Assembly: GCF_902459465.1 (NCBI RefSeq)
Contig: NC_047083.1
Span: 6,448,001 to 6,512,000 of the forward strand
Reading direction: 5' to 3'
Length of the DNA: 64,000 nucleotides
Source: Asterias rubens
Lineage: Eukaryota
Shown here piece after piece: positions 6,752-62,701 of the stretch. Positions within the stretch are counted from its first letter, which is position 1, and each line of letters starts with the position of its first letter. The translations under genes and the position numbers were made by a program. The notes under the pieces were generated by a model. It searched no databases. It had not been told where the DNA came from and saw only the letters and a list, made by a program, of their open reading frames with translations.

Positions 6752-6956
6752 AATGATTTATTGAAGCCGCCAAGATGGACACCATGCTTTAGTTTACATG
6801 TAACTATGGCCCTTTTCGAAACCATGGCTCCAGATTGGTTCAGGCTAGATTGGCCCCGCGACCGTTTTGACATTTTGAGCATGCTTTGTGTATCTGTGCT
6901 CAGGGCTTCAGACGGCCTGAAGCGGAATCCAAAGCCGAGGTATCGAAAAGGGACTA

Positions 6957-7672
6957 ATGCCTAGGTGTATAGTTGTATGCTTCAAATCAGTGCGCCATGA
7001 TGGTTGCTGGTGTTACTTGGACTCATGTCTAGGTGTATAGTTGTATGCTTCAAATCAGTGCGCCATGAGGGTTGCTGGTGTTGCTTGGACTCATGTCTAG
7101 GTGTATAGTTGTATGCTTCAAATCAGTGCGCCATGAGGGTTGCTGGTGTTGCTTGGACTCATGTCTAGGTGTATGCTTCAAATCAGTGCGCCATGAGGGT
7201 TGCTGGTGTTGCTTGGACTCATGTCTAGGTGTATAGTTGTATGCTTCAAATCAGTGCGCCATGATGGTTGCTGGTGTTACTTGGACTCATGTCTAGGTGT
7301 ATAGTTGTATGCTTCAAATCAGTGCGCCATGAGGGTTGCTGGTGTTGCTTGGACTCATGTCTAGGTGTATAGTTGTATGCTTCAAATCAGTGCGCCATGA
7401 GGGTTGCTGGTGTTGCTTGGACTCATGTCTAGGTGTATGCTTCAAATCAGTGCGCCATGAGGGTTGCTGGTGTTACTTGGACTCATGCCTAGGTGTATAG
7501 TTATATGCTTCAAATCAGTGCGCCATGATGGTTGCTGATGTTACTTGGACTCATGTCTAGGTGTATGCTTCAAATTAGTGCACCATGAGGGTTGCTGGTG
7601 TTACTTGGACTCATGCCTAGGTGTATGCTTCAAATTAGTGCGCCATGATGGTTGCTGGTGTTACTTGGACTC
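6957..7672. repeat. Minisatellite, 68-bp and 60-bp units (~10.5 copies)
   Basis: actcatg anchors at 7021, 7089, 7157, 7217, 7285, 7353, 7421, 7481, 7549, 7609 (actcaag at 7669); short units lack 8 bp. Confidence 0.95.
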
Positions 7673-8324
7673 AAGATTTCACCCAGAACCCTTGGGTGCC
7701 AATCATGCCCATCAGGATACGCATAAGGGCAAATTTTGGCAGAGGGCAACATCTTCGCAATCAATGGTTTTAAAGTAGCAATGGTTTTCATTTTCATTTT
7801 GCAAAGGGCACTTCCATTTCAAATTTGTTCAGTCTATGGGAAACTTTTAGCGTAGAGGGGCACCAAGGCCAGGGGCATAATTCCAGTACTGGTATCTACA
7901 TGGGCCAGTTAAAACATTCTGATGAATACAAGCAAGAAGCTGAACATTTGAAGTTTAAAGGAACATTACAGAATTGGTTTTGCTATCAATTTTTATTTCT
8001 TCCCAATTCTGTAACGTTCCTTCAAGTTTATTTGATGCCATTCAATTGTTGTCCTTCACATCAACTACCCTCCAGGGAATAACTTAAATAATCCATGGAT
8101 TTATGGACTCAATTCCAATCTTAATAAAGAAACTGAGGATACACAATTCGTTCTTGTAGTTGTTTATTTATTCTTTAAATCATTATAAACAATCCAAGTT
8201 AATGGAATACACTTTTACATGGAAAACCCCCACGATATTTTACATTACTTTTTTAGGGGAAAAAACTTGTTAATTAAATAACTGTACAAATATTAAACAT
8301 GTTTTGGTTTAAACAATAAAAAAA

Positions 8325-15499: not shown

Positions 15500-16889
15500 C
15501 TTGCGGTACTTGCTACGGCAACTCATTCAAGCGTGTGGACATACACTTGCGGTACTTGCTACGGCAACTCATTCAAGCGTGTGGACATACACTTGCGGTA
15601 CTTGCTACGGCAACTCATTCATGCGTGTGGACATACACTTGCGGTACTTGCTACGGCAACTCATTCATGCGTGTGGACATACACTTGCGGTACTTGCTAC
15701 GGCAACTCATTCATGCGTGTGGACATACACTTGCGGTACTTGCTACGGCAACTCATTCATGCGTGTGGACATACACTTGCGGTACTTGCTACGGCAACTC
15801 ATTCATGCGTGTGGACATACACTTGCGGTACTTGCTACGGCAACTCATTCATACGTGTGGACATACACTTGCGGTACTTGCTACGGCAAATCATTCATGC
15901 GTGTGGACATACACTTGCGGTACTTGCTACGGCAAATCATTCAAGCGTGTGGACATACACTTGCGGTACTTGCTACGGCAAATCATTCAAGCGTGTGGAC
16001 ATACACTTGCGGTACTTGCTACGGCAAATCATTCAAGCGTGTGGACATACACTTGCGGTACTTGCTACGGCAACTCATTCATGCGTGTGGACATACACTT
16101 GCGGTACTTGCTACGGCAACTCATTCAAGCGTGTGGACATACATTTGCGGTACTTGCTACGGCAACTCATTCATGCGTGTGGACATACACTTGCGGTACT
16201 TGCTACGGCAACTCATTCATGCGTGTGGACATACACTTGCGGTACTTGCTACGGCAACTCATTCATGCGTGTGGACATACACTTGCGGTACTTGCTACGG
16301 CAACTCATTCATGCGTGTGGACATACACTTTCGGTACTTGCTACGGCAACTCATTCATGCGTGTTGACATACACTTGCGGTACTTGCTACGGCAAATCAT
16401 TCATGCGTGTGGACATACACTTGCGGTACTTGCTACGGCAAATCATTCAAGCGTGTGGACATACACTTGCGGTACTTGCTACGGCAAATCATTCAAGCGT
16501 GTGGACATACACTTGCGGTACTTGCTACGGCAACTCATTCATGCGTGTGGACATACACTTGCGGTACTTGCTACGGCAAATCATTCATGCGTGTGGACAT
16601 ACACTTGCGGTACTTGCTACGGCAAATCATTCAAGCGTGTGGACATACACTTGCGGTACTTGCTACGGCAAATCATTCAAGCGTGTGGACATACACTTGC
16701 GGTACTTGCTACGGCAACTCATTCATGCGTGTGGACATACACTTGCGGTACTTGCTACGGCAACTCATTCAAGCGTGTGGACATACATTTGCGGTACTTG
16801 CTACGGCAACTCATTCAAGCGTGTGGACATACACTTGCGGTACTTGCTACAGCAAATCATTCAAGCGTGTGGACATACACTTGCGATAC
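15500..16889. repeat. Minisatellite, exactly 30 x 46-bp units, derived from a C2H2 zinc-finger coding segment
   Basis: Unit cttgcggtacttgctacggcaa(c/a)tcattca(a/t)gcgtgtggacataca; 15500 to 16880 = 1380 = 30 x 46. Last unit plus flank reads TCGTCYSKSFKRVDIHLRYKH. Confidence 0.95.
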
Positions 16890-17289
16890 AAGCATGAATT
16901 GAATGTGAGTTCAAAGCCAGCAACACTGCAACAAAATTGGCTAGAAACGTTTTTGTTGCACTCTTCAGGAAAGAGGAAGTGATCAGACGCAACCTGACAG
17001 GCAAGAAGTCCAATGCTCACATTGTCACAATGCTTCTGTTATCCAGGTGGACATTGGGAATGGTGTGCTGTTAGAGAAGGTGTAGAAGTAACTTGATGTT
17101 CAAACATGTGGGCACATTTCTGGTTTGTCACATCCAAACTTTTGGGCCATTTGTTTAAAGAATGATTATAGTATTAATTGATTGCATACTAAATACATAC
17201 ATCTACTTATTATTTTGATTTTCCCTATTCTATTGTTATTTTTTGAAATTTTCTTTTCGGGGTGGGGTGTTCAAATTTGAACATTGATC

Positions 17290-18300
17290 ACGCGATAAGT
17301 GATGCGATACGTGATACGCGATAAGTGATGCAATACGTGATACGCGATAAGTGATGCGATACGTGATATGCGATAAGTGATGCGATACGTGATACGCGAT
17401 AAGTGATGCGATACGTGATACGCGATAAGTGATGCGATACGTGATACGCGATAAGTGATGATAACGTGACACGCGATAAGTGATGCGATACGTGATAAGT
17501 GATGCGATACGTGATACGCGAAAAGTGATACGCGATACGTGATACGCGATAAGTGATACGCTTTACGTGATACGCGATAAGTGATATGTGATACGCGATA
17601 AGTGATGCGATACGTGATACGCGATAAGTGATGCGATACGTGATACGCGATAAGTGATGCGATACGTGATACACGATAAGTGATGCGATACGTGATATGC
17701 GATAAGTGATGCGATACGTGATACGCGATAAGTGATGCGATACGTGATACACGATAAGTGATGCGATACGTGATACACGATAAGTGATGCGATACGTGAT
17801 GCGATACGTGATATGCGATAAGTGATGCGATACGTGATATGCGATAAGTGATGCGATACGTGATATGCGATAAGTGATGCGATACGTGATACGCGATAAG
17901 TGATGCGATACGTGATACACGATAAGTGATGCGATACGTGATACACGATAAGTGATGCGATACGTGATACGCGATAAGTGATGCGATACATGATACACGA
18001 TAAGTGATGCGATACGTGATACACGATAAGTGATGCGATACGTGATACGCGATAAGTGATGCGATACGTGATACACGATAAGTGATGCGATACGTGATAC
18101 GCGATAAGTGATGCGATACGTGATACGCGATAAGTGATGCGATACGTGATACACGATAAGTGATGCGATACGTGATACGCGATAAGTGATGCGATACGTG
18201 ATACACGATAAGTGATGCGATACGTGATACGCGATAAGTGATGCGATACGTGATACGCGATAAGTGATGCGATACGTGATACGCGATAAGTGATGTGATA
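17290..18300. repeat. CpG-rich minisatellite, 26-bp unit (cgcgataagtgatgcgatacgtgata), roughly 39 units
   Basis: Directly visible; irregular units at ~17455-17590; many CG>TG/CA variants. Confidence 0.95.
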
Positions 18301-18629
18301 CCAATGTATAGACATGGACCCTTTCTTACATCTCTAACAATATCTCTGAAAATCTGATTCACATTTTTTTCTGAATGTTTCTTTTGTTTGTTTCTGTGTC
18401 ATTGCTTTGTGTTGTCCTTTCTATTTTGTCTTCCTTGTTCAATACTGTTTTGTTAAATATATTTGTTTTGTGTGTTTAAGGCATTTATAAGCTTCAGCTT
18501 CTTGTGTAATAGCTCCACTTCGTGGAGTTTTCTTGTAACAATTGTTTTGTTTCTCTAAAGTGATTATTCATGTGGAAATAAATGTTAATGAATTGAATTT
18601 AATCGAAATGTTGTATGGCTTAATTTCCA

Positions 18630-19113: not shown

Positions 19114-19265
19114 AATGTACAGGTGTAGTGTTCACAATCTTCTGTTCCCTGATGGGTTGGAGGTGATCAACCTAATCCAAGAGATCTGTAATGTACAGGT
19201 GTAGTGTTCACACTCTTCTGTTCCCTGATGGGTTGGAGGTGATCAACCTAATCCAAGAGATCTGT
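19114..19265. repeat. 76-bp direct tandem duplication
   Basis: aatgtacaggtgtagtgttcaca...ccaagagatctgt at 19114 and 19190. Confidence 0.9.
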
Positions 19266-21880: not shown

Positions 21881-24800
21881 CTACTTCACTCCTGCCTTAC
21901 CCTGTCTGTGTAACAAAGAGAAACAAACAAGCATCAGTCTACTGTATTATGGTACTGTGTGGTGTCATGGTCCAGTTGTTAAGAGCATCAAATATAATTA
22001 CCGTAATTAACAATTCAAAAATCTGGCCCCAACCTCAAGGTTTTGAAAAACTTCTGCCATTGACAGCGCGTCAAAATGACAATGCATTGACGAGATACAT
22101 GTTGAGATACATGTTCAAGTGAGAAGACTGGTCTTTGACAGTTACCAAAGGTGTCCAGTGTCTTTAACAAAAAGCTAAAGAGCAAGGCTTGACTTTATTA
22201 GCCATTCTTTTCGCATTTTGGTTACACTGAACCCATTGGATTAAAGAATGAATACACAGCCTTACTTGGCATTACACAGTAGGATCAGATTCTGCACAGC
22301 TGTTAATGTTGACATCTCATTCTGGCCTGTTATCAAATGTCGATCCACTACAACATGCACTGCATCCACTACACTAGCTGTATAAGACAAAGGTCAAACA
22401 CAAATATTAAATAACTCGGCCAGTGTGGCAGTGTCGTGGCCGAGCAAATGCACCATTTCAAACTCTGGCGTTTCTGATTAGCAGTGTGGGTTCGAATCCC
22501 CAGCCGTGAATCCCCAGCCGTGACACTTGTGTCCTTAAGCAAGACACTTACATGTAACCATTGCTTCGTCCTTCGGATGGGACGTAAAGCCGTTATTGGT
22601 CCCATCTGTTGTGTAATGCACGTTAAAAAACCATCAGCACTTATCGAAAAGAGAAGGGGTTCGCCCCGGTGTTCCTGGCTTTGGCTGCTAAATGCGCCGT
22701 AGGACATTGTAAACCCTTATAAGGTGCTACATAATTGGGCCTCAGAATTGCATAATTTTCAATAACCCCTCTCTCTGTGTAAATGTATATACTAAGCGCC
22801 ATGTTTGGTAGATACGTGCGCTATATAAGACTTCAATATTATTACTATAATTTTTTTCCCCCTATTTAGTGGGGTGCACTCAGTTGAGACTTACCACTGT
22901 ATGTAGCGCCATTGTCCTTGATATAGTCCTCCAATATTATTGGTAAATTAGAGAAGGTAGGTGATCGAGCAAGCTCATACACTGAAGGCTAATAACAAAA
23001 GAAAACAAATCGTAATACAAAACATAAAATGTCATTCACTTGTAGCAAGTGTCAGCATGATTGTTATTGCTCACATAAAACAGCAACTTTGTCTGAAAAT
23101 AGATAGTTAATTTATACTGCAGTTACTCTGCACTATAACATGACTTCTCTGGAAAACACTTTAAAGGCACTGGACACTATTGGTAAATTACTCAAAATAA
23201 CAATTAGCATAAAACCTTACTCAGTAACGAGTATTGGAGACTGTTGATAGTGTAAAACATTGTGAGAAACAGCTCCTTCTGAAGTAACGTAGTTTTCAAA
23301 AAAGGAGTAATTTTCCACGAATTTGATTTCGAGACCTCAGAATTAGATTTTGAAGTCTCGAAATCAAGCATCTGCAAGCACACAAGGGTGTTTTTTCTTT
23401 CGTTATTTTCTCGCAACTTCAACGACCATTTGAGCTCAAATTTTCACAGGTTTTTTATTTTATGCATATATTGAGATACACCAAGATGAAAAGACTGGTC
23501 AATTGACAATTACCAATAGTGTCCAGTGTCCTTTAAATGTTGTGTACTAAATGACTGCAGGATGAATCCTATTACTTTACTCATACATATTCATGACCGA
23601 GAGTCGACTTCTTACTGGTAGTGGTCCATTCATTATCACATGCCTGGTGCTATCTTTGCAATTTACCAAGGGCGCACGTGAGTATTCACGCACATGATAA
23701 ATACGCATGACAAGTAGAATAGCGCATTTACCATTGTGCGATCAGTCAGCCCGTGCGCTATTCTACTCGTCATGCGCTTTACGATAGTGGTACTGTTTTC
23801 TACACGCGCACAAACATCTCTTTATCAATATACAACACATAAACAAACGTATCATGGTGCATTTTATTTCACAGTCGTCATTTTCCCTTGCTCCAAACAA
23901 CTGAATATGTATGAAGTATGGTAAAACAAATATAACATGGTTTAGTCGGGTGTAGTTGATATGAGCTCCCCTCGGTATTGGAAGTTGACGAACTAGTTCC
24001 CTCGGCTTTGTCTCGGGGAATAGTTTGGCAACTTCAAATACCTTGGGGAGCTAATATCGACTAGTCACCCTCAAACAAACCATGTTATATTTGTATGGTA
24101 GTCACTTGACAAATGAATGTATCTGCAGACTGGCAAATGGCCTACATGGTCTATTGAACAAGCTGAGCACTTTGTTTGGATATTCTGCAACTTTGTGTGT
24201 ATAACACCTGCAGTAGAGCTTGCATTGCTATTTGTAGTATATCTTTGAGAAGGCAATGGGGCTTCAGGATGCTATCTCACAGATATCTCACAGACTTATA
24301 TAAGGTACATTGTAAATCCATTATTTCCAGGAATTGTGTGCCAGCTCATAAATATGTAAGCAGACCAGAGCTGCTTCGCACAAAAATTTGCTTAGCATTA
24401 AATGTCTTTCTTGATAAAAGCACGATTACCAACCAAATTTCCTATTGTTGCATATTGCTTGTTATTGTACATGTATTCAGCTGTTGTTTGCTTATCCTGA
24501 AATTCACGTGGAAATTTGGTTGGTAATCCTGTTTTTATCAAGGCAAAAAATGTCATGCTAAGCAAATTTGTGTGCTTAGCAGCTCTATGAAATTGGGCCC
24601 TGATAAGTCTGCCGCCAGCTAGCGTTCAAGAGTCTCCCATTGAACTTACCGCAGTCAAACTATAGCCACTATACGCCCACTTAGCTCCAGGAGTCTTCAC
24701 ATCTTTGTCACAACATAAGGCAGCCACACCCATACCAATTGCACACACAGGCTCTGCAGGAACACAAATCAGACAAAAGTGTCACCCAATCATGCAGATA

Positions 24801-27800
24801 CCAATAGGGTTTGAATAGAAGGCTTTTAGGATGCTTGGTGGCAGCAGACTTACCAGGTAAAATCCATGGTTATTGGTTAAGTGCGCACGCTCAGAACCAC
24901 CTAAACAATGGAAATTTACCTGGTACATGTAAGTCTGCTGCCACCTAGCATTCAAAAGTCTCCCATGCAGATGTTAATATGTATACAGAGGCAGGTGCCA
25001 ATAGGGCTGGAATAACCACCCCTCCCCCCTCCCCCCTCCCTGGACCGCTGGGCAATGGAAATTGATTGGCCTACTGTACCTCACAACTTAAAGGGAAGGT
25101 GTACTATCAATGATCACTCATTATTTTAGCCAACAACCATTTTACCAGTACTGGTATTTAAGTGACTCTCCGGAGAACGTCACTCTTCACGACTATAGAA
25201 GCTGAAACTTCTAAAGGTAAATAAAATTACAAACAAAAATCTTCATTCACAGCGAGTAAGGCCAAAAAATGTTAGCTTAACAATTCCCTGCTTAGCAGGA
25301 CACCAGGCACAACTTGTACACTCACATGGTATTTTGGCTGGTCACTTTCATCAGGTAAGCATTAAGCTTGGGCGAAATCACGATATTATCGAATATCGCG
25401 ATACTAACTTGGAAACGATTTCGATATCGGATCGATTTGGTTTTTATTGAAATATCGATATATCGAGATATATCGCGATATCGATTAAATATCGCAATAT
25501 CGGGATGTATTTTCTAGCTGAGACATCATGCACCCCATAGGTTTGGAGTAAAACCAGAAGAATAGGTCATTAGAACACATCTCTTATGCTGTGACTGTCT
25601 CTTATACAACTGAAGACTGATGATGTCAAATTTAACTAATCGCGATTATATCGAATATCGCGATATATTGTCGGCGATATATCGGGAATAAAATAAATCG
25701 ATATCGCCCAAGCTTAGTAAGCATAGTGTTGCGGTACTTACATGTAGCTACCTTAGTATGTAAACATCTCTATGAAATTAGGCCTTAACATGCTCCTAGC
25801 CTTCTGCCAAAGGGGTTCTATACATACCCAAGACACATACAATCCACAGGACTCAAAACATCAGGTGGGATTCAAACCAAACACCTCTGCAGTGCTAGAG
25901 CAGATGTCTTACTACTAGATCTGTTACATTATAGTTGTTTGCTTTGCGGTTGTCTGAACTTACTTGTTTGTGATTTGAAATGCTGCAGTATCTGAGCCAG
26001 ATCCTGATTATGAGATAGATCATACAGAGCACCAGGACAGTCAATGAGTAGAAGAGCTGAGTAACGAGTTGCTATAACAATAAAATAAACAATATCAATC
26101 AGATCCTGATTATGAGATAGATCATACAGAGCACCAGGACAGTCGATGAGTAGTAGAGCTGAGTAACGAGTTGCTATAACAATAAAATAAACAATATCAA
26201 TCAGATCCTGATTATGAGATAGATCATACAGAGCACCAGGACAATCAATGAGTAGAAGAGCTGAGTAACGAGTTGCTATAACAATAAAATAAACAATATC
26301 AATCAGATCCTGATTATGAGCTAGATCATACAGAGCACCAGGACAGTCAATGAGTAGAAGAGCCGAGTTACGAGTTGCTATAACAATAAAATAAACAATA
26401 TCAATCAGATCCTGATTCATACAGAGCACCAGGACAGTCAATGAGTAGTAGAGCTGAGTAAGAGTTGCTATAACAATAAAATAAACAATATCAATCAGAT
26501 CCTGATTATGAGCTAGATCATACAGAGCACCAGGACAGTCAATGAGTAGTAGAGCTGAGTAACGAGTTGCTGTACCCAGACAATATCATTCAGGTCAAAG
26601 TCAGTCAAGAACCAGTTTTCATTAATTACACCTTTTGTTTTAAAGACAGAGAAGAGGTCTTGTAAAGCCTCAGTGTTTTCTGATACGATATATCTTTGTC
26701 TAAGGGGATGTGGGAAGAACCAGTCATACACGTTCAAAGAGAAAATTATTTTTTGTGGTTTTTTTCCGAAGAAAGAGTTGCATGCCTGATTAAAAAATTA
26801 CAAATCAGCATTATCGATGTAAAAGAATATTGAGTATTTGAGTATTTTCGATATATCGATGGACGTTAGTGATTAGTGCACACATAATGTAAACCCATGT
26901 ACATGTAGGACAGTAAAAACATGTATAGATTAGAAGCCTACACAAGCTATTAATAGTATAAGGCATTTTGAGAAACAATATACTTTGAGGTAGTGTGGAT
27001 GCTAACAGAATCACATTTTTATGCCCCAAAATTTGAATCTGAGATGCGTAGATTGTGTAGTCTATATATGGGAATTCTCTTCCTGCTAACATATTGGCAG
27101 GGCTCGAATTTGGGGAAAAAATCCACAAGACCGCAGGGCTTGTTGCTCAGAATTTTTACTGGACCGGAAGATTTTTTACAAGACCAACATTTTATTAGGA
27201 AAAAAAAAAAGTTAACACGATAGAACAGCAGGCCTTTTTCATCCCTTAGGAGGCTTTTTTTTTGCTGTGAAACCCAATCAATAAAGTTCCATATACCTAC
27301 TTCACGTCATTCTCGCCGCATCAACAAAAAAATTCCAATTTGACAGGCAAATCACCAACAAAACACTGCAACGTGCAGCATTCATAAAAAGATCGTCATA
27401 AAAAGATTGACCAAAAATTTGACAGCAGTAGTCAGAAGCTCATCAGCGTTGGTAGCCATACTTAGCAAGACGTTTGGCAACAAGACCTTACTTTTAATCC
27501 ATGCAACACAGGGATGTGTGGTATTGCAACTAGACCTTCTTAATGCAAATTCAACACTCCTTTGTAAGGTATCAGACTTTACACATAATCAGTGGTAAAC
27601 AAACATCGCTGTACTAAGGTGTGCCGCCGCGCCGGGTACCAACACATCACTCCCTCGTCTCCACTCGCTCACTCCCCGGGTGCATAAATATAAATGGTTT
27701 GAGACTAGATGTACAAGGTGTGGGCTAAGTAAACTGAATGGAAAACTTGTATGCAGCCAGATGCACGTGAAAAAAGGACGGATTGACGTTCCGCAGGCGT

Positions 27801-30800
27801 GCTCAGAACACTGATTTGACGACAAGTAAAACAAAAACTTTTATTCTAAATGAGATTGAAATACATTTTTTAATGAAAGATAATATATTTCATATAATTA
27901 TTTGTAATAGTAACTATATTAGTATGTATACAAAAAAAACACAAGACCGCCGGACTTGTCCGGCATAAAGTTTACTGGACCGAAGCTAAAATCACTGGCC
28001 TCGGGCCTGTGGTCCAGCGTGAAATTCGAGCCCTGATTGGCTCAAGATTTTCTGCGGAATCTTGAAAACATGACCACTTCTTTGCAATGAAATTTTCACA
28101 TTCTAGTTTGATTGTATTATACATGTTCTAGTACACTTATAGGATACAAACAAAAACCAAAGGGTATATTTTACCTTTAAACATAAATTGAAAATTTATT
28201 CTTAGGTGAATTATAACCGACTTATATTAAAACGTGAAATTATATCCTAAACTAATTTCAGTTCACTATGAATAATCCACACCATTATTACATACAGTGT
28301 ACACTATGTATTCATAATTTGGTGAACATGGTATTCTAAAGGCCTGCAGGTTTACACTGTTTTACTTACCATCAATTGTATCCAACTTGACAGGTGTTGA
28401 GAACGGCTTACTCTTAAATTCATTTAACCATCGTTTGCTGCTCTCATCTTGTTCAATGAAGTCAATTGGCTTTCTCTGCAAAATATGACAAACATTTAAA
28501 CACAAATCTCTGGTTAAAGGGTCTATGAATTTGTTTTCCAACACAAAACACAATGTCCACAGATTTACATTAAACTTACACAGTTTGAAGATAATAATAG
28601 TAGAAAGATTCCCTTAAAATTCCCTTAAATATTACTTACTGAGGTGCTTTAGTTTTAGAGAAATGCTTGAGTCCAGTGTTCTTAATCGCTAGGCCATGAC
28701 ACGCCACAACAAAGTCTGCCATCTTTGAAATCAAATTTATGGAAAATTACTTCTTTCTCAAAAACTACTTTACTTCAGAGGGAGTGGTTTCTCACATTAA
28801 TGTTTCATACTATCAACAGCGCTCCATTCCTTGCACCAAGAAAGTTTTTATGCTGACAACTTTTTTGAGTAAATACACCAATTTATGTCCACTGCCTTTA
28901 AGGCAGTGCTGCTCAGAGAAGATAACAATGCAATGACTTACATCTGGTGATGCCAACTGCACACTGAATGCTGAATGACATAACGTGAAAGCATGTATGA
29001 AAGACTGTGCTGGAACTCCTGCAACATACAAACAACAAACATTGTTATACCTCTGTACAAGTTGTGAAGTTTGGTTGGTCGAGAACAAATCATGTGACTG
29101 AAACAAAAACAAAAGGTTACATGGCTCAACGGGCCGGGTAACCTGAAAAGTGATGTACACCGGTGTACATCACCTTGATCGTTCCCAGGGTTGGTCGATT
29201 TCCAGCGCTGTGTACCAAACAACCGCGGGTTCGAGGGAATTGTTTCTTGTTTGTCTGCTTATTAAACAATGAAGAGGGCAAATAGTCCGTCGTAAAAACG
29301 TTTGAAAGAAGATGACAACAGAACTTCATGAAAAGGAATAACAATTATACAAAGTTATAACAAAACAATTGTTGCACGCTGTGACTGGGGTCCAATGGGT
29401 TTTGTACACCCTCGAGGTAAAATGGCACCCTCGGCTTCGACTCGGGTTCCATTTCCCCCTCAGGTGTACCAAACCCCATGGACCCCGTCACAGCGTGCAA
29501 CAATTGTATGTTATATTTCAGTAAGGCTGAACAAAATAATTTTTGTGTTTCCGGTTACCCGACCGTCCCTAGAAAATCACGCCGACCCTGTATCTTTTTA
29601 TTTAAAAAAAACGTATAAAAATAAAATATTATGGTGCCGACCCTAAACCTCATTTTTGTGCACATCGTCCTGGTACGTTTCTATGTTTTTTCCTATATTT
29701 TTTATTCATCCAAACAAGATTGTCAGACACTTCGAACCTTTGTCATTTCGTACCTTGGTCACTTCAATCGTACGTACCCACCGGCACGCCGCGTGTCCTC
29801 CCGTCCTTCGGATCGTTATGATTTCGTCCGTCCACACACACACACCACACGCACCAGGACCTTCTCGACAAATTCAGTTGTTGTGTTTATATATTCTAGA
29901 AATGTGCTTGCAACACTTGCGCAAATTGAAGACGTGCCTACGCAAATTAAAACATTTTACCTGCGAGAATGTGCACATTTCCAACATTGCGCATTGGAAT
30001 TTTGAACTTGCGTGATTACTTTTTTAGCGCGGTTCTGTGACGTACTTGGGCTCGTCGAAAAAGGAGTGCAGGGGTGTTTTCAGAAATTTGTCACTCCGTT
30101 TATTTGCAGATAAAGTTGGGGGTCAAGCATTGCAATTTCTGAAAAGTTATTTTTTGCAATTTTGTTTTTATGACTTAAGAATACATTAATATAAATGAGG
30201 AAAGTGTTTTTGAAAATGTTTGACAAGGGTCAACACAAGCATGGTGCCCCACCGAGACGCAATCGATCGAGACTTCTCAACTCCTTTCGTTGCATGCATG
30301 TGCTGTACATGAGTATGTACATATACATAAACATGTACATCTAAACCAAACATGTACTATGTGTGTACGTGCGGCGTGTGTTTGTGCATGCCGTGTACTG
30401 TGTGTGTCACGGCACCGCATGTAAAAATAAATAGTGTTTTTCGCTGCAGCATCATGGCGGCACAGCTGGGGACAGGGGGAGTCTTCGCATTGCTGCAAGG
30501 ATCTAGCATGGCGTCTCCACAAACCTCACATATTTATATTTATTCATTTACTTTTACATAAAAACTGCAATAAAAACATGTTGTTATTTGTTCTTGAAAG
30601 AATGGTTACATGTTCTTGTGTTTGTATTTGTACTCAAACCATCCAATTTCAACTGGTGTTAATTAAGTCAGATACATGTATTCACAAATCAGTGAATAGA
30701 CAGTACTGCATGTAGGGACTATTGATATTTACATAACAAATTTGACACGGTCAGTTTTTCAATTGCGTGCGCAAAATAAAAAAAATATCAGAACATTAGC

Positions 30801-33800
30801 CTACCCTAATTTTCAGAGCCATAAAAACTTTAAGCAAAAACAAAAGTTATTGCCTACCTACCTACCCTATTCTCCTGCCACAGTGTACCGGTAATAGGAA
30901 ACACAACTATTCTTTTGTTCGGCCTAACAAATTGTGAAGTTTTATTGGTCGAGAACCAACACCGACAAAGACAGTGTGCTATACGGCTCAGGGGTCAGGT
31001 AACATGAGAAGTGATATACATCACCTTGATCGTTCTCAGCGTTGGATGATTTTTAGCGCTGTGTGATAAACACCCGCAGGTTTGAGGGAACAGTGAAGAA
31101 TTGTGTCTCATTTGAATGTTCGTCTGCTTTTAACAATGCATACTCCGTCCTAATGTTTGAAGATGACAACAAAACTTTGAGAAGAGGAATAATAATGTTA
31201 CCACTGCATTAAAAAATGGTTGCACGCTGTGACTGGGGGTCATCCTTTTTTATGCCCATCCGAATATAAACTGTAGAATAGTTGTTGAGAAAATAGAATT
31301 AGCTGTTGCAAACAACTTACCAACCAAACGGCCCAAGGGTATAAATGCAAAAAATAGTTTTTAATGGCCTGACCATTGACCCTAGCAGAGTCTTTCTCTC
31401 AGGCTAAATGACAACACAACAAACATGAACAGGTAACTAAGTGAAACATAAGCAGTGAAGTGGAAATACATGAATGGGATTAGAAAGCATACAGAAAAAA
31501 GCAAGGAGGGTTAAACAATGAATAGGGAGACAAGGGGGGGGGGGGTTGAAGTGAAGGGAATGGCTTACCATAAGAAGATGGAAACACAAATGACGATACC
31601 AAGGGTGGGGAGGTGGGGGAAAAAAGTAACTAATTAGTGAATGAGGCTCAGGCTAAAAAGCTGTGGGGAAAAAGGAGATGTCAAACTAAAAGGTTTATTA
31701 GTTGTTTCCTTCTTGCTTGAATGTTCAGACCATGGGGTTGAATGGTCTAGAGGCATCTATTCCAGAGTTTCTCCCTACTAAAACGAATATAATAGTTTTT
31801 CTACTTTTTTGGGTGTAAAAAGACTTCTGGTCAAGGAAACATTTTTGAATTAATACACTTTAGTACAAGTCCTATAGTCAAGTGGAGAACCCTGCAATTG
31901 TTCTTTTGCTGAGTGCCATACGTGCGTTATTAAGGGCGCTTAATAGCCCTGGTAGGCGTCAGTCAGCGCCACTGCACCTTGACAACCTGGGTACAAAGCT
32001 TCTTTACAGCGAACAAGAATTCGACAACAATTTTTAAGTTATGTTTCACCTGCTTTGAGAAGTTGAATTTCTGTTCAAATATTCTTGGTGTCCCCTGCTA
32101 CACTATCGACCGTTCACAACCAACAAATTATTTCCAAAAATAAGTCAAAGCTACACAAGGACAAACAAGACACCCAAGGCAAGCCCGGCATTTACTGCAT
32201 TCCCTGCGATTGCGGTAAAGTCTACATCGGGGAGACCGGCCGCAACATATCTACCAGAATCAAGGAACATCAAGCACACAGCAGACTGGGACACCTAAAC
32301 AAATAAGTAATCATCAAACACTCACACGAACAAGATCATCTTATCAAATGGAAACAAGCCCAGCTCATCGCTCCAGTCAAGTTCTGGCACCAATGCAGAG
32401 TTAGGGAGGCAATCGAGATTAAAGGCAGTGGACACTATTGGTAAATGTCAAAGACTAGCCTTCACAGTTGGTGTATCTCAACATATGCATAAAATAACTA
32501 ACCTGTGAAAATTTGAGCTGAAGTGGTCATCGAAGTTGCGAGATAATAATGAAAAAAAAAAACACCCTTGTCACACGAAGTTGTGTGCGTTTAGATGGTT
32601 GATTTCGAGACCTCAAGTTCTAAATCTGAGGTCTCGAAATCAAATTCGTGGAAAATTACTTCTTTCTCGAAAACTACGTCACTTCAGAGGGAGCCGTTTC
32701 TCACAATGTTTTGTACTACCAACCTCTCCCCATTACTCGTGCTCAAGAAAGGTTTCTGCTAATAATTATTTTGAGTAATTACCAATAGTGTCCACTGCCT
32801 TTAAGGCCCACAACACAGTTCCACAAGACATCGGATTCTTCGCGCGTTCGACCGATCGTGAAGGTAAACCATTCCTGTGGGCGATTTCTCAAAGCAATAA
32901 AATTCATTGCAAGACAAATTTTCAGTATCACCATAGTGATTTATATTGTGACGTCACTTTAGTTTTAGTTAGCAACTACGATTGATTTGCAGTTAAGATC
33001 AATCTTACACCTTTGTGAATTCGGCCCCTGAACATCGGCCGATCGCGCAAAACCATTCCTGCACAATTGGCCGATCGCGCAAAACCATTCCTGCACAATC
33101 GGCCGATCGCGCAAAACCATTCCTGCACATTCGGCCGATCGCGCAGAGCCAATCCCCTACGATCGGTTGATCGCGCATGTTCTTTGCCGAATGTTGCTCG
33201 ATCGACGGATTGTTGCGCAATCGACCGATTGTTGCGCGATCCACCGATTGTTGCGCGACCAATAGATAGTTCAATAGCGCAGCATGATCGGTCGATAGCG
33301 CAGCGCGATCGGTTGATCGCGCAGATTGACCTATAGCACCCAACATATATTCCAATAATATTTGTAGCCTTATAATTATCGTAGGAGGTCCTGTTTTCGA
33401 GGTGTCCCTAAAATCGCGGCAAATCTTTTACCTCTATGTTAACAGTCCCTAGATACAAAATTTGTGGTTTTATTTGCCAAGCAAAGAGTCTCCTCTCCCT
33501 TGACCAAAACTTAGAAACACGTAAGGCTCCACTGGATATTTGCACTTGTAAATATGCAAAAAGGTTGGTATTTTAGGCATTTCTACAAGGTACAAAAATA
33601 TGTCATAATGTTGGGGCCATATAAAAATATTTGCCCACCGAAAAAGTTTCATCAAACACTATTTCAATACACAATTCATGATGATCAAATCATGTGACTG
33701 AATATTTTGCTGAGCATTCTGGAAAAAAAATACAGAGAAGCCATGTGCCATATATCATTTTCTAATATTTTTGGAGATTTTTTTCTTAACCCGCAGATCA

Positions 33801-34889: not shown

Positions 34890-35469
34890 TCCTCTTCTAC
34901 TGCTGAGCACACGTGTGTGTTGTCTTTAATACCACTTATTTACCTGTGAATATGATATGTCGTATCACACCCTGGTGGCCAACAGCATGCGTTTGAGCAT
35001 CCTCGTCTTAGCTAGCTGCTGGCTGTGTTTGTTCGATTGCTGTTTCGGGCCGGGTGCATGTCATGTGTCGTGTGTAGGTCAAAGGTTATTGCGCAGCGGC
35101 GTGTGTACACAGAAAGCCTCGTTGCGTCGTCTGCTGCATAAGGTTGTATAACTGTTGGCATCAGAAAACTTAAATTTCCATTGCTCTATGCCTTGGTTCA
35201 TTGACGAAAAAAAACTGTCTTATCTTATTCATTTATTTATTTATTTTCAGGCAAGCAGTACATACAAAGAAACCACACAGAAAAAATAACACTACAGAGA
35301 CCAATTTATTACCTACTGCGGATAATTGCAAACAGCGAAAATGATCCGATCTTACCAGACAAAAAAGAACATGACAACAATAAAAGTTCCTGAAAATATA
35401 GTTTACAACAAATCTATCACAAAAAAATACTTAACAACACAACAATTAGTTGTAGTTTTTGTTCATCAA

Positions 35470-35755
35470 CTTGTCCCCCGCAATCTTCTCCCCGGATGCA
35501 CACACTTGGAACACGGTACTTGGTCCCCCCCCCCCGCAATCTTCTCTCCGGATGTACACGCTTGGAACACGGTACTTGGTCCCCCCCCCCCCGCAATCTT
35601 CTCCCCGGATGTACACGCTTGGAACACGGTACTTGGTCCCCCCCCCCCCTCCCCCGCAATCTTCTCCCCGGATGTACACGCTTGGAACACGGTACTTGTT
35701 CCCCCGCAATCTTCTCTCCCCGGATGTACACGCTTGGAACACGGGGTTGGTCCCC
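35470..35755. repeat. Minisatellite, ~55-62-bp units with variable poly-C, 5 copies
   Basis: cccgcaatcttctccccggatgtacacgcttggaacacgg repeated. Confidence 0.9.
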
Positions 35756-38110: not shown

Positions 38111-41100
38111 ATGGCAGCAAAATATCCATCTCGACATACTGTTTTAGCAGTGTTGTTTGGTTTATGTGTTACCTTAACGGTGATCACAATGGTAAGTCAG
38201 TTTCCGTGTATTCATCAGAGACCGTGGAGACCGTCTTTAGGTCACACATGTACACCCATTATACATTTTAGTTCCAACTAGCGTTGCTTTTACTTGCACT
38301 TGTTTTCTAAGCACAACTTTCAACCTGTTTCACGCCCACCTCGTCTTCACCTTACCCCTGGTAGGACGTCAGTCAGTGCACGGCACTGACGTCGGGTAGA
38401 AGCTTCTTTACAATGCGAACACAAAGCTAACTAAAATTTTATTTATTTTTTACCTGATGTGAGATGTTGAAAATCCGTTCATATATTTTCAGTGTCCCTT
38501 ATTACTACATTTTCAATGAGTTCACAGCTAACAAAAATATATCCATATAGGGTTTTTGAGGCATTGCTTATGGTGAGGTATCAATGTACATGTATATTTG
38601 GTTTGGGGTAACGCCATGTGTGTATCTACTTGCCAGGTAGAGTTTGTTCTTAGAGAACTATCTTGCTTAATTCTACTACCGCGAAGTAGATAATCGGGGG
38701 TTCGGGAGACTTCTCAGTTCTGAAAAGAACTGTCCTGCTTTTAACTATATTACCAGGGCGGATGGCATAGAAAATAGACTTGTACTACTACTTTAGCTTA
38801 TAGAATCGTAATTAACTGTACTGCCGCGGAGTCATTTCTGAATTGGTCTCAACGTTTCGACTAGTTGCGACCTCCTGAAATAATGTGCTGGCCCTCTATC
38901 TCCTGAGCTATAGCCCCATGCAGCGGTCCCCTCACTCAACTCTTCTCGTTCATGCAGGCTCTCCATCAATATCCATACAAAGCAATCGAGATCCTCTCTT
39001 GCTATAGACCTTTATCACGGTGTGCTCATCTTGATTTTACTCCATTCCAACTCATTGTAACCAAACTGAGGCTGGACGAAATAATAGTCTGGTGCCATGC
39101 GCAATGAATGTTAGCATTCATGACTGTTATTGGAAAAAGGGAAAATGGCCAAGATGGTGACAGCGTAATAAATGTCTATGTAAAGTCTTTGTGTCATTTT
39201 GTATCAACCCTTTCGGCACTTCTTTTCATTTCACTAAACGTTGAAGAATACCGGTACATATATTATTTTTTAAACGCACATGGAGTGTGTGCAAAACAGA
39301 GCTGGTTTTGTGTGTTGTTGTGTTGATATGTTTGTTTTGTTTTGTTTGAACAAATCCCAGCCCGGCTATTATGCGGTATTCACACTTTTCTAGTGTCTTC
39401 TTTTTTTATCTTCCTCCTCTAAAAAATATTCCTTACAGTTATATGGTTTCGGCTGATACACTTGATCTTGAGTAATGGTAATATTTGCGCGTTTACAAAT
39501 TGAACCCCGAATGGTTCACTCCGAATCCTCTGTGCTGTTGAGACATTTCATCACGCATAATCAATAGTGTTGTATGGTGAAGAACACTTATAATCTGTTT
39601 CCTCGTACGTGTGCGCAAAAACCTTGCACGTGTGAGCAAAAACCTTGCACATGTGAGCAAAACCTCGCACGTGTGAGTAAAACCTCGCACGTGTGAGCAA
39701 AACCTCGTACGTGTGTCTGAGTAAAACCTCGTACGTGTGAGCAAAAATCTTGTATCGTGTGAGCAAAAACCTTGTATCGTGTGAGCAAAAACCTCGTATC
39801 GTGTGAGGGAAACCTCGTGTGAGCAAAAACCTTGTACGTTTGGGCAAAACCTCGTATCGTGTGAGCAGAACCTTGCACGTGTGCGTAAAACCTCGTACGT
39901 GTATAAGCAAACACTTCGTACGTGTGGGCAAAAACCTCGCACGTGTGAGCAGAAACCTCCTACGTGTGAGCAAAACCTCGCACGCGTGAGCAAAACCTTG
40001 CACGTGTGAGTAAAACCTCGTACGCGTATAAGCAAAAACCTCGTACGTGTGGGCAAAAACCTTGCACGTGTGACTAGAAACCTCGTACGTGTGAGCATAA
40101 CCTCGCACGTGTGAGTAAAACCTCCCACGTATGGGCAAAACCTCGCACGTAAAAGCAAAAACCTCGTACGTGTGAGCAAAAACCTCGTACGTGTGGGCGT
40201 AGGTCTAAGTATTTGCTTGTATAGGCCACAATAGGGCCACACCACGCCATTTTTAAAAGTGGTGTGTGTTGTGCTCTACAGGAGTGTTTGAAAGTGACTT
40301 GCCATTAGAAGTTGTCTCCTGAACGAAATGTACATAATTGTTGTGAAAACTTTCAGCCTAAAGAGAAAATATACTGCACTTTTTATACATGTTCTTCCTA
40401 CAAACTCTTCACTATTGGCCTAGCCACAACTTACTCCACATTCCTGTCCCTTTACTAGTTGTTGAAAGACAGAGTTGAGTTTGTTAAAACTCCTGCCATC
40501 CGTGCTGTCCCGTTTCAGTTGAAACAATCGCCTTCTAATGTGAGTATGATTGAAAGAAAGAACACAACCGGCCCATCCTCCACGGGTATCACCAGCCACA
40601 CCAAGACTAACGTCCAACTGATACCACCTAGAGGACACATTCAAGTCGGAGATATCATCAAGTATCGGATTCAGACGAGAGATTCCGAAGGGAGGGACCG
40701 GGTTATAGGCGGGGATTTCTGGTACGCCACTCTAAACTCAAATAATCCGCGAGCTAGTACAGCTGGTTATGTTGCTGACTACAATAACGGTACATATGAA
40801 GTCACATTGCTGGCAGCGTGGGCTGGTCAAGCTGAATTCAAACTCATTCTTGTGCATCCCAGTGAGGCTGTTGACTGCTTCAGAAATGTGATCTGGCCTG
40901 CAAAGGAAAGAGTACAGTGGAATGGATACTTCAACCATAAAGGCAAGAAAGCAGAAAGGACAACTTGCTTTTTGAGGAGTGGCGGGCCATGGACTGGACT
41001 GTGTCAATATCCAGCACACCATGCACTTGGGAAGACAATTCTTGTTTGCCAGAAACCGAAAGGTTTGTCCTGTGATGATTTCACATCTTACAATACCGAC

Positions 41101-44220: not shown

Positions 44221-44884
44221 GATCAAAACAATCGATTGGTTAAAAACCAAAGGTGTCTCGTAAAGTAGTTACTTGCCTGGGCAATCTAGCAATCCGCCCA
44301 GGCAAATAAGTAATCCGCCCACCAGGCAAATTAGTTATCCGCCCACCAGCCGGAACTTCGTTACTGAACTTCTTGTATCAATAAAGTGTATTAAGATCAG
44401 TAAGTTGTCTTGCTCTATACCAAACTTCTTGTCTCAATAAAGTGGATTAAGATTTGTAAGTTGTCTTGCTTGTTTGAATTACAGTGTCAATTTGATTGTT
44501 CCAAACGGTAAAACAGAATTGCTAATTTTGGCACATTTGATTTGTGTCTCATTCTCATTAACGTGGTCAAGTCCAGCAACATCTAAACATTGCAATTGTG
44601 GTATCATTTTGAAGAGGAACAGTTCAGCTTTGCAATGATACATACCATATACAAAGAGAGTATTAAATAATAACAAATATACTGGATTGAAAAAAGTTTC
44701 CTTACTTTTTGTGAGCAGTTTAGGATGGAATAGCGAGATGTCGCGCTTCGCTCGGCCCCCATGCCACTAGGTAGGCGCGATTCGTGCGTAAGTATAGCGA
44801 CCTTGAAAATGATAATGTAGGGTGAACTAAGATTCGTCCAAGTTGGGAATTTAAGTGGGGTGCTTATTATTTTGGGAGTTAAGT

Positions 44885-45270
44885 AGTTTCGTGAATACGG
44901 CCCCAGGGGTCATCATTTTGTAGAATGGGTATGCTAAAAGTTGTTTCGTGAATACGGCCCTAGGGGTCATCATTTTGTAGAATGGGTATGCTAAAAGTTG
45001 TTTCGTGAATACGGCCCCAGGGGTCATCATTTTGTAGAATGGGTATGCTAAAAGTTGTTTCGTGAATACGGCCCCAGGGGTCATCATTTTGTAGAATGGG
45101 TATGCTAAAAGTTGTTTCGTGAATACGGCCCCAGGGGTCATCATTTTGTAGAATGGGTATGCTAAAAGTTGTTTCGTGAATACGGCCCCAGGGGTCATCA
45201 TTTTGTAGAATGGGTATGCTAAAAGTTGTTTCGTGAATACGGCCCCAGGGGTCATCGCTAAAAGTTGTTT
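44885..45270. repeat. 57-bp minisatellite, ~6.5 near-identical copies
   Basis: gtttcgtgaatacggccccaggggtcatcattttgtagaatgggtatgctaaaagtt; 19-aa periodicity in the minus-strand ORF. Confidence 0.95.
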
Positions 45271-51900: not shown

Positions 51901-54144
51901 ATGAGTTATAAGAAATCGGGGAGGACAGGGTTTGTCGTTGAAGGTGGGACCTACATCCCTCCGAGACAGCCCGAGTCCTCGGGGGATTGCGGCGGTGACA
52001 TTACGTCGCCGCCAAAGCAATCTCCCAGTCAGCCCCCTCAGCCACAGCCGGCTGCCGGGGCTGACGGATCTGTAACCGGCCGAACGGGGGACCTTACGGT
52101 CTCGCCGTCTCCGCCGGGATCCGCCCGACAGAAGGGGAAACGCCCCGGTAAGGCCAAAAAATCGCTCAGTACCGGGGCGACACCCAAAAAGGGACGAGTT
52201 GGTAAGCGGGACTCCACTACGGGGCCCGCCCCATCGATCCCAGGCCAGCCAGCGGGGCACGCACAGCCGGAGGGGGTACCCCTCCACGGCTCGGTGCACC
52301 CAGGGCTGGGTACAGGGCATGCACAGCCGGAGAAATTACCTCTCCACGGCTCAGTGCACCCGGCCCCCCACAGTGCACACGCAAGTACCGCGGTGCCCAG
52401 GGATGGCCTTTTATACCGCCGCCCTGACCAGGCAGCCTGCGCTATCGGGCTTGGGGCAATGGCGGTCGCCAAAGAGATTGGCAACGGGGTACAGACCCCT
52501 TGGGGCCCCGTCGGAACGCTACGTTCCGAAGGGTCGCCCTCTACTTCAGGGTTTACCCGCTGCTCGGGTATTCCCGCCCCGCAGCCGACCTCCGACACTA
52601 CAACGGAGTCTGCTCGGGGACGCCCCTCCAAAAAGGGCAAGAAAGCCCGCCCTCGTAGCCCCAGCTCGAGCGGCTCCACCTCTGGTCGCCCCCACCGTGA
52701 CAAACGTCACAAGGGCGGGGACCCGATCTCGAGGGAGGAATTTTTGGAAGCTTTTCACACCCTCGCGGCCTCAATTACGGGTCGTCGCGAGGGTGGTGGA
52801 CAAGGCCCCTCTGACTTGGCCACCGAACCGGTGCCCCACAGTCAGCACGGCCATGGGTGGCTTGCGCCGGGCCAACGGGGACTCCCCCACACGGCTAGCC
52901 GTGCGCCGGATTCCCCCCCGGGTTTGCCACAACCGCCCGCTAACCCATACGTTCAGGGGCGGCTGGCTACCACCCAATGGGGACCCCCTCAGGGAGGCCC
53001 GCCATGCATCAGCCTGCACCCGTCGGCGGCCTTTGAATCCGACCATGGGCGCCGTGATGATGCCGGTTCGGAATCCCGTTCTTCGATGACATCTCGTCCC
53101 TCCGACTCGGCCGACTCGGCCAATGAGGAGGACGAGTTGGTCACCTCCATTCAACGATTGTCAGTCTCCGAGACCGAGCTACGCTTGGTTCAGAGAGATA
53201 TGATAAGAGTTATGAATCTCCCCTGTGAGCCGGAACCCCCCTCCGACGAACGCCAATCGTTCAAAAAGAGGGCGGGCCCCGCAACGGGCGCAGCTAAACC
53301 CTTCCCGGTGATGCCCTTGGATCGGGTGTGCAGCGACAGGATGGATGGGGTAATGGGAACAAAAAAATGGACCCCGTACTCCAAACGTACGGAGCCGTAT
53401 TACCGTTTCCCTCCAGCGGATTTTCAGAAATATTTCGCCACTCCCGTTCTGCCAGACTCAGCCTCCGACAAGCTGATCGCGGACAGGGGATCATCATCTT
53501 CCAAGCTTCCGTTTGCGGACAAGATCCGCGGCAAATTGGAGGACGTCGCCCGGAAAATGGATTCTTCGGCACGCATGGGTATGCGCACAACATCCTTTCT
53601 CCTGCTCCTAACAGAATATCTGGAGCAGGGGTGCGACGAGGAAAACATGGTGCCGGCGGACATGATGATTGCGGCCCTTCATTGTTTGGACAACGGTCTT
53701 TGTTCCATCCTCGACCAGTTCACTAAGATCACGACCCTGGCGACGACGTCACGCCGCGCCAATGTGCTAGATGCACTTTTCCTACCATCAGCCGGGGCGC
53801 GTAAACGCCTCGACGATCTACCACTCACCGGCGTCGACTTATTTTCTGGGCAGTTTCAGACGTCCATGGAGGCTGAAGCGAAGCGCCTCAAAGCCACGGA
53901 CAAAATCAATCTGAAAAAGCCCAACGCCCCGCCTAAAGCCGTGGGTAACAAGGCGAAGAAACAACCTTCATTCGTCATCCCCCGCCGCCGCCAACAAAAG
54001 TCGACCCGTGGCAGTTTTCGTGGCCGCGCCGATAACACAGCGGGCGCACGTTACCCACAGACTCAACCTGGCCAACCACGCACCCAGTCGGGTCGTGGTT
54101 TCCGAGCGCCCGCCCCCCGTTATACCGGGGCGTGGCGCAAGTGA
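51901..54144 (+). CDS. DIRS ORF1, gag-like protein (747 aa)
   Basis: Long intact ORF upstream of RT; low-complexity N-half, helical C-half with RRANVL...R..L..LP.TG..LFSG motif typical of DIRS gag. Confidence 0.85.
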   Translation: MSYKKSGRTGFVVEGGTYIPPRQPESSGDCGGDITSPPKQSPSQPPQPQPAAGADGSVTGRTGDLTVSPSPPGSARQKGKRPGKAKKSLSTGATPKKGRVGKRDSTTGPAPSIPGQPAGHAQPEGVPLHGSVHPGLGTGHAQPEKLPLHGSVHPAPHSAHASTAVPRDGLLYRRPDQAACAIGLGAMAVAKEIGNGVQTPWGPVGTLRSEGSPSTSGFTRCSGIPAPQPTSDTTTESARGRPSKKGKKARPRSPSSSGSTSGRPHRDKRHKGGDPISREEFLEAFHTLAASITGRREGGGQGPSDLATEPVPHSQHGHGWLAPGQRGLPHTASRAPDSPPGLPQPPANPYVQGRLATTQWGPPQGGPPCISLHPSAAFESDHGRRDDAGSESRSSMTSRPSDSADSANEEDELVTSIQRLSVSETELRLVQRDMIRVMNLPCEPEPPSDERQSFKKRAGPATGAAKPFPVMPLDRVCSDRMDGVMGTKKWTPYSKRTEPYYRFPPADFQKYFATPVLPDSASDKLIADRGSSSSKLPFADKIRGKLEDVARKMDSSARMGMRTTSFLLLLTEYLEQGCDEENMVPADMMIAALHCLDNGLCSILDQFTKITTLATTSRRANVLDALFLPSAGARKRLDDLPLTGVDLFSGQFQTSMEAEAKRLKATDKINLKKPNAPPKAVGNKAKKQPSFVIPRRRQQKSTRGSFRGRADNTAGARYPQTQPGQPRTQSGRGFRAPAPRYTGAWRK

Positions 54145-59174: not shown

Positions 59175-59429
59175 GTGCCCCGGGAATATGTCTTAATGCT
59201 CCCTGGTGCAGTCTAGGCCTTTGAAGAGAAATCTTTTGAACCTACTGATGATCTGTAATGATTCAAAGTTAGGAATTAGTGCAGTAGAAGTTAGTGCGAG
59301 TTTTTTAACAGTGATAGGTCTAGTGTGTTCATTTTAGGAACTGATAACACGCACTTCAGATAATTAATTTGTATAGACTTTTGTTTTCTCGTACAAAGTT
59401 TATTTTAAATTATTTGGAGCAATTTATCA

Positions 59430-61700: not shown

Positions 61701-62701
61701 AAATGTGTTTTCTTTATGATTGATAAGAACACTCAAAGGCACTGTATAACACTTTTGGTAGTCACTCAAAATAACTGTTAGCATAAAAACTCACATGGCC
61801 TGACATTACAGTAAGATGTCTAATGTTTGCAAACAGATTAAAGAACAATCAAAATAAGAATAAGGTGTTGTGTTTGAAGGTTTAATGTCAACTTAACTTC
61901 TTGCATAGAGCGATTTTGATCATGCTACAAACATTAACTTAAATAAATGCTTTGTCAGATCGAAATCACTCGTTTTACCTTAAAGTACATACTGAATAAA
62001 TACAATACTTTGAAACATAAAATTTCTTATAGCTTGTTTTTTTTTAAGGCACGCAATCCCAATAAAAATTGTAGGATTGCAACACTTAACTTCCTTCTGA
62101 AACGGATATTGGAAAGTCACGGCCCTGGGACACAGAGCGGACGCCCAGATACGTGGTAGTTAGCTATCAACGGTCTCTGCATTCGGAGGACAAGTTCCTG
62201 CTGCACAAGTCAAGTATTCGCAGCTCATGCGAATTACATTTATAGGTAAGTAAAAATTAAATTGATAGTGTAGCTTTTGAAGATAAATAAACCAGGAACA
62301 ATAAACGGTTGAAAATCTATACATGCTTCGAAGGGATATGACATCCTACGCTTTTTAATTTAGTATGCGATGACAATAAGTGTTTGGTAGTTTGTTTATT
62401 TTGTGTATTTCCATTTGCACAGTTTAAACAAAAATCAACAACAGTAATTGTTTATGAAAAATGTAATAACGATGATACAAGTTTAACCCCCTCCTGTAGT
62501 GGAGTACCCATACAACCTTTGTAAAGCGCCTATTCATCGAGATCAATGTGCTGAAAAGAACAAAACCATAGGAACCAAACTACAATAAATAACATCTGAC
62601 ACTAATAAGTTTTGGAGATTTTATGAACAAATGGCAAAGATTTTTCTGAGGCGTTAATGGGAGGTTGTTCCATATTCACGTAGCAATAAAGAACAAGTTC
62701 T

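Follow-up and report, generated by a model that had tools for sequence, protein, structure and literature searches.

The GATD1 gene of the sea star Asterias rubens carries, at the boundary of intron 3 and exon 4, a tandem array that multiplies the splice acceptor into six copies served by a single donor. We suggest that this array is probably an exon-boundary minisatellite of the "mirage" type, whose upstream units are spliced out with intron 3 and leave the length of the protein unvaried. The striking set of six in-frame acceptors would then most likely be an intronic minisatellite with one working acceptor. This corrects the first reading of the locus, by which the array tunes protein length through the choice of acceptor, a claim left unsupported by the sister species, the annotated 225-aa product and the fold of the protein. 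Positions are those of the window, i.e., the whole 64-kb stretch of A. rubens DNA that was analysed (Table 1).

Table 1. Features of the array and of the neighbouring GATD1 exons (P0004, annotated GATD1 protein; X18, RNA assembly)
Feature	Positions	Strand	Description and source
GATD1 exon 3	28370-28475	-	106 nt, ends ...ACAATTGATG then gtaagt; tblastn with P0004, sequence, X18 contig
Ancestral 3' end of intron 3, before the distal unit	26570-26599	-	tttgacctgaatgatattgtctgggtacAG; weak tract, 0.50 pyrimidines at -20 to -3
Tandem array	25998-26571	.	TRF: period 102, 5.7 copies, 92% matches, score 1001
Five upstream units	26072-26569	-	exon-like starts 26569, 26467, 26377, 26275, 26173; sequence, TRF, script
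Authentic exon 4	25964-26071	-	108 nt; exact match to P0004 residues 79-114
GATD1 exon 5	24650-24753	-	104 nt, KPVCAIGMG..., nucleophile-elbow strand; tblastn with P0004, sequence, X18 contig

The minus-strand gene had been named GATD1 (glutamine amidotransferase-like class 1 domain-containing protein 1, of the DJ-1/PfpI superfamily) in a preliminary description, and the annotated protein and matches to solved structures agree with that name. By tblastn, its exons match exactly the NCBI GATD1 protein of A. rubens (XP_033646125.1, 225 aa, here P0004), which is not named as one among several isoforms; at the Ser of DLSHNQ and the Lys of DKDVKT, P0004 and the window agree and A. amurensis differs. 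The solved GATD1 chains 8a3p_A and 7nd2_E match P0004 over residues 7-218 with E ~4e-75. There are 250 homologues at E <= 1e-30, and among the 120 homologues listed every named one is GATD1 or bears the older name Parkinson disease 7 domain-containing protein 1; a protein-cluster search with the translated array matches GATD1 from A. amurensis and other deuterostomes. The Pfam family DJ-1_PfpI (PF01965) scores 20.4 bits on residues 67-129, below its gathering score of 26.6, which reflects a weak profile and is not evidence against the fold, because many GATD1 orthologues carry a precomputed PF01965 match. Pfam searches with single exons gave chance matches only. P0004 carries exactly one exon-4 unit, so that 26071 is the sole acceptor behind the annotated, canonical product.

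TRF finds one array at the GATD1 exon-4 boundary, arranged head-to-tail and with a unit size in the minisatellite range. The 102-bp unit had been described as the end of the intron plus the start of exon 4, and both TRF and the sequence bear this out: every unit spans the intron-exon boundary, which is fixed by P0004 and by the orthologues of Acanthaster and Patiria, and repeats the splice signal. Each upstream unit consists of a 72-nt exon-4-like part (60 nt in the unit starting at 26467) and a 30-nt intron-like part ending in AG, and the first 72 nt of the authentic exon 4 form the last unit of the array. Five of the six acceptors are preceded by the identical 30 nt tgattgatattgtttattttattgttatAG, and the distal one (26569) by ...attgtctgggtacAG. 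At the internal acceptors a branch-point-like CTGAT lies at -28 in each case, and the tract is 0.72 T. This is the only occurrence of the array in the whole 417.6-Mb genome.

The exon-3 donor, which follows base 28370, has to pair with one of these acceptors. A script places AG-preceded exon starts at 26071, 26173, 26275, 26377, 26467 and 26569, with the donor after 25964 (GTAAGT) common to all of them, so that exon 4 could be 108, 210, 312, 414, 504 or 606 nt long; each length is a multiple of 3, and the coding frame (frame 2) runs without a stop from every start. The claim of six in-frame, stop-free options with one donor and these lengths was thus accurate. Also upheld was the report of a 90-bp unit in which a 1-nt and an 11-nt deletion together keep the frame: the unit starting at 26467 lacks G7 and the 11 nt at unit positions 53-63. 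Each extra unit would add an exon-4-like stretch ending in (S/A)HNQDL, followed by IDIVYFIVI. Variants specific to single units occur at unit positions 9, 14, 20, 29, 32 and 57.

Comparison of orthologous loci, as the preliminary description had proposed, gives little reason to think that these open frames are maintained. In A. amurensis (locus L002) the orthologous array is made of four units, with a TRF period of 101. There the proximal acceptor alone gives an in-frame exon, of 108 nt; the three upstream acceptors would give 209, 310 and 412 nt (mod 3 = 2, 1 and 1) and run into many stops, and the distal unit contains an in-frame stop of its own. In Acanthaster planci and Patiria miniata, exon 4 is single-copy with the same boundary as in Asterias, and a tandem repeat is absent at the locus. 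The frame of the extra units is therefore not conserved in A. amurensis, and the outgroups have a single copy. The preserved frame of the 90-bp unit had been taken as a hint that upstream acceptors are used; the out-of-frame, stop-ridden acceptors of A. amurensis speak against this, and a pair of deletions keeps an open frame by chance in 20-27% of cases.

The two Asterias arrays have a common origin. The internal units of both species share a modified intron-like part, ttgtttattttattgttaYag, which is set apart from the ancestral intron end by several substitutions and a T-rich insertion of 7 nt; an array of at least two units is therefore older than the split between A. rubens and A. amurensis. 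The A. amurensis counterpart of the ancestral intron-3 end is tttaacctgaatgatattgtctagttatAG, and the tract of the distal acceptor differs between the species at 3 of 12 positions. Within each species the array appears to be homogenised: by unit distances, internal units are nearest to units of their own species, and distal or edge units are the most diverged. For example, units 2 and 3 of A. amurensis share a 1-nt deletion and are mutually nearest, and its decayed distal unit has at least 11 differences. This pattern shows that the units undergo concerted evolution. Between the internal units of A. rubens and the real exon there are 1-3 substitutions, against an intron identity between the species of only 91-95%; the A. 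rubens copies are therefore young. As to the earlier claim that copy number varies, it holds between species (six units versus four); variation within A. rubens is suggested by an RNA assembly graph (X18, below) that misfits the reference allele.

These observations suggest the following scenario. In the Asterias lineage, the last ~30 nt of intron 3 (CTGAT, T-rich tract and AG) and the first 72 nt of exon 4 would have been duplicated in tandem, and unequal exchange may then have expanded, shrunk and homogenised the array. Productive splicing would join the exon-3 donor to 26071, the acceptor nearest the exon-4 donor, and the five upstream units would leave with intron 3 as non-coding decoys, to give the normal GATD1 of 225 aa. 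The choice of 26071 could be made by exon definition, since it has the shortest distance to the downstream donor. The upstream units of A. rubens would still be open because 102 is 3 x 34 nt, because the intron-like part happens to be open and because the copies are young. The array, its A. amurensis orthologue, the single-copy outgroups, the canonical product and the canonical path in RNA are observed; we infer that 26071 is used exclusively or nearly so, that the upstream units are neutral and that exon definition is the cause. Counting against this scenario, five of the acceptors share the same 30 nt upstream and ~72 nt downstream, and the sequence gives no ground for the silencing of the upstream ones; a unit-to-unit junction found in RNA at about a third of exon depth, a bias towards synonymous substitutions and the low joint chance of six open frames, all described below, also weigh against it.

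Arrays of this kind are known from lancelets. In amphioxus, mirages are minisatellite-like duplications in which intron-exon boundaries are repeated in tandem, found in Adh3, the globin genes BflGb6 and BflGb9, troponin C and PGBD5, which duplicate splice sites without giving rise to aberrant mRNAs (PMC3087553; PMC3902484). The closest parallel is BflGb6, in which an intron's 3' end and the 5' portion of exon 2 are repeated, as the corresponding parts are in the starfish, in units of 150-160 bp, with six and three units in two haplotypes; its units evolve in concert, and splicing was found undisturbed by RT-PCR (PMC3087553; PMC3902484). The starfish array shares with the mirages (whose units measure 10-160 bp) the boundary-spanning unit, the variable copy number, the repeated splice signals and concerted evolution from which edge units are excluded. 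It differs in its host and in that all of its acceptors are in frame and stop-free, with five of them identical; moreover, the splicing of the lancelet genes is reported to be regular, whereas the starfish array is known from sequence and an RNA assembly. In the literature searched, mirages were not described outside lancelets. The starfish array is therefore most likely a mirage-type member in a new phylum, the echinoderms, of a kind that is itself already known.

Two other systems are instructive. In human F7, a 37-bp VNTR in intron 7 spans the exon 7 donor, and its pseudo-sites are identical and in principle able to function, yet they are silent (PMC1557585). As in the starfish, the edge unit of a minisatellite spans the boundary, and F7 chooses the site contiguous with the exon (PMC1557585); however, F7 repeats a 5' splice site downstream of the exon, whereas the starfish array repeats a 3' splice site upstream of it. 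The 5'-to-3' scanning rule of F7 cannot be transferred as it stands, because it would favour the distal acceptor, and the annotated product does not use that one. The second is the Rogers model, in which introns are gained or extended by tandem genomic duplication (PMC3265369; PMC4974935). Here too an internal tandem duplication carrying splice signals is made harmless when the spliceosome removes the extra copy, although the starfish array lengthens an existing intron and creates none.

The main alternative, which we consider possible though doubtful, is that upstream acceptors are used appreciably, at least in some alleles, so that in-frame GATD1 mRNAs contain one or more additional 102-nt units. 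Isoform length would then be set by acceptor choice and by allele, either as a tolerated by-product or, less likely, as a selected function. The internal 3' splice sites are consistent with such use, being identical and each having the same CTGAT and T-rich tract. Exons of 210 and 312 nt fall within the size range of exon definition and should still be manageable by it. What the published mirages would lead one to expect is the opposite, since they leave splicing undisturbed (PMC3087553, PMC3902484).

The openness of all six options also favours upstream use. Only one of the three frames of the 102-nt unit is open throughout. The chance that the unit length is divisible by 3 is ~1/3, and the chance that the 30-nt intron-like part is open in the continuing frame is again ~1/3. 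Two random deletions within one unit restore an open frame at the frequency given above, and a random substitution creates a stop in 3.3% of cases. The joint chance that all six frames are open is ~0.02, unlikely but not remarkable for a feature that was chosen because it looked odd. Because the sister species is out of frame, the frame has not been maintained over time. The substitutions among the A. rubens units point in the other direction: of six events, four are synonymous (T20A, A14G, T29C, C32T) and two nonsynonymous (Y>N, A>S), a bias (P = 0.045, with 26% expected to be synonymous at random) that supports use of the upstream units. However, purifying selection acts on the real exon, and exchange of the units with it could give the same bias.

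RNA provides a hint of upstream use and also evidence for the canonical path. In X18, an RNA assembly (Logan contigs of a public run), a 391-nt contig of depth 11.7 contains exon 3 without differences (28370-28475) and 29 nt more, and a 2928-nt contig of depth 14.2 contains exon 5 at contig positions 83-186, again without differences, and runs on to the 3' UTR; the 82 nt with which this contig opens would represent the end of exon 4, joined to exon 5. The major paths thus run from exon 3 to a unit start (11.7) and from exon 4 through exon 5 to the 3' UTR (14.2). A third contig, of 105 nt and depth 4.72, or about one third of exon depth, corresponds exactly to 26351->26247 and reads from a G57 unit through the intron-like part into the first 29 nt of the next unit. 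Next to the array, the unique intron sequence (26502-26809 and 28196-28349) shows a depth of zero, although coverage holes by themselves prove nothing. To judge from their coordinates, the contigs end where a de Bruijn graph would make them end: its paths would meet in one common node (G plus unit positions 1-29) and part again at position 57, where T leads to exon 5 and G to ATTGAT.

The depth of the junction contig, set against uncovered unique flanks, speaks for upstream use; that depth is inflated, however, by repeated k-mers. The k-mers of the junction contig occur 2-5 times in the reference allele (mean 2.97), so that the depth per copy would be ~1.6 if unspliced RNA were evenly covered. 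Evenly covered unspliced RNA of the reference allele is nevertheless a poor fit, because the lack of contigs from the unique flanks would then have P ~1e-4 or less. Isoforms of the reference allele fit poorly as well, because T57 -> intron-like junctions are missing: on the reference allele, a transcript with the G57 -> intron-like junction also carries two T57 -> intron-like junctions. These two should break the 2928-nt contig, which was found unbroken, and the hint of an isoform therefore calls for an unseen allele that differs from the reference. Given another array allele, both unspliced RNA and an isoform are possible sources, and the X18 animal probably carries one. The junction RNA would then be either unspliced, from a longer and more uniform array, or an isoform with one additional unit, making up ~1/3 of transcripts. 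It is mainly because of this contig that our confidence in the sole use of 26071 is not higher.

A contig or read that joins exon 3 to a unit running on into the intron-like part is absent; X18 has the internal unit-to-unit contig only. Three raw RNA runs (X22-X24, 2026), mapped on 24500-29100, place 0-2 reads on the GATD1 exons, too few to decide, and an exon 3-exon 4 joint is not listed among them. The 22,000-29,000 reads that these runs place on 24500-29100 are nearly all from dispersed repeats, at 90-95% likeness. Such repeats lie in GATD1 introns 2, 3 and 4 (24500-24650, 24808-24961, 25270-25731 and 28504-28811) and draw hundreds to thousands of RNA reads at that likeness in every run mapped; many of these reads continue into sequence that does not match, suggesting families of transcribed transposons, and they swamp read mapping here.

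At the level of protein, the evidence argues against upstream use. The public product is the single 225-aa protein, and GATD1 orthologues across animals have 210-225 aa with one copy of the segment. A protein with the repeat unit or a junction peptide was not found among 5.8 billion protein clusters: a 212-aa array translation retrieved normal GATD1 of 210-225 aa only, and a 67-aa two-unit query had no match. Exact look-ups of P0004, of P0004:88-225 and of the 35-aa product of an X18 unitig returned no record, which is weak evidence, and the spliced exon 3-exon 4 joint had no matches in JGI metagenome contigs. One GATD1 sequence of unusual length, P0007 (metaclust, 316 aa), was considered as a repeat-bearing isoform and rejected: this vertebrate-like protein from another animal is unrelated, and the two tandem copies of the exon 2-4 segment within it could be a real internal duplication or an assembly artefact.

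The predicted structure points the same way. In the AF2 model of P0004 (pLDDT 91.3), the 24 repeated residues 79-102 comprise a core strand (84-87), a loop with a helix (93-96) and the start of helix 101-112, and the segment directly precedes strand 117-120, which bears the conserved Cys118. R81, Y82, G92, D96 and L97 are invariant in 32 orthologues. By this model, a second copy of the segment followed by IDIVYFIVI would sit inside the alpha/beta core and duplicate the core strand, and such an insert would presumably be harmful or at best tolerated. A stronger form of the alternative, namely that some alleles of A. rubens, unlike A. amurensis, truly use one or more upstream acceptors to make GATD1 proteins with extra 34-residue units, the synonymous excess and the deletion pair being traces of constraint, seems unlikely to us.

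Two further possibilities can be set aside. The array is real and not an assembly artefact, because the independent assembly of the sister species has the orthologous array, with four units and the same modified intron-like part, and because the X18 contig reproduces the unit-to-unit junction exactly; in addition, the array spans only ~600 bp and 22-35% of its words are present in several public runs, so that a collapsed or expanded repeat at a single-copy locus is very improbable, even though tandem repeats are sometimes mis-assembled, as happened in a draft genome to a globin mirage of amphioxus (PMC3087553). A longer GATD1 in which 26569, the distal acceptor, is the genuine one and the entire array is coding is barely credible: this acceptor adjoins the ancestral end of the intron, and the units leave the frame open throughout, but its pyrimidine tract is the weakest and has diverged between the species, A. 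amurensis would be frameshifted, and the animal orthologues are of normal length with one copy.

The array is of some interest for the study of splice-site choice. Five identical 3' splice sites 102 nt apart constitute a natural test of the roles of donor distance, transcription order and exon definition, and a counterpart to the F7 IVS7 model for 5' splice-site choice. The two Asterias species form a useful pair, in which products of upstream acceptors would be in frame and stable in A. rubens and out of frame and decayed in A. amurensis, making leaky use measurable. The occurrence of the array in both species also suggests that mirages are more widespread among the minisatellite-rich genomes of marine invertebrates.

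Finally, the 64-kb window contains 11 minisatellite arrays including that of GATD1. The region is thus repeat-prone, and it is unsurprising that one array straddles an exon boundary. The ten others (4-492, 6951-7673, 15500-16889, 17285-18294, 19114-19265, 33027-33177, 35469-35755, 39601-40195, 44881-45256 and 59428-61701) range in period from 21 to 128 bp, reach 39 copies and together make up ~13% of the 64 kb. Several minisatellites are open in more than one frame; 17271-18362, for example, has ORFs of 250-363 aa in three frames. In a search of the whole window against Rfam, no family reached its gathering score. The G+C content of 52001-57000 is 0.53-0.62, as compared with ~0.40 elsewhere in the window, and this interval likewise has no Rfam family match. 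In A. amurensis, downstream of GATD1 (L002, 20787-21303), regularly spaced tblastn matches resembling WINEFSS mark another tandem array.
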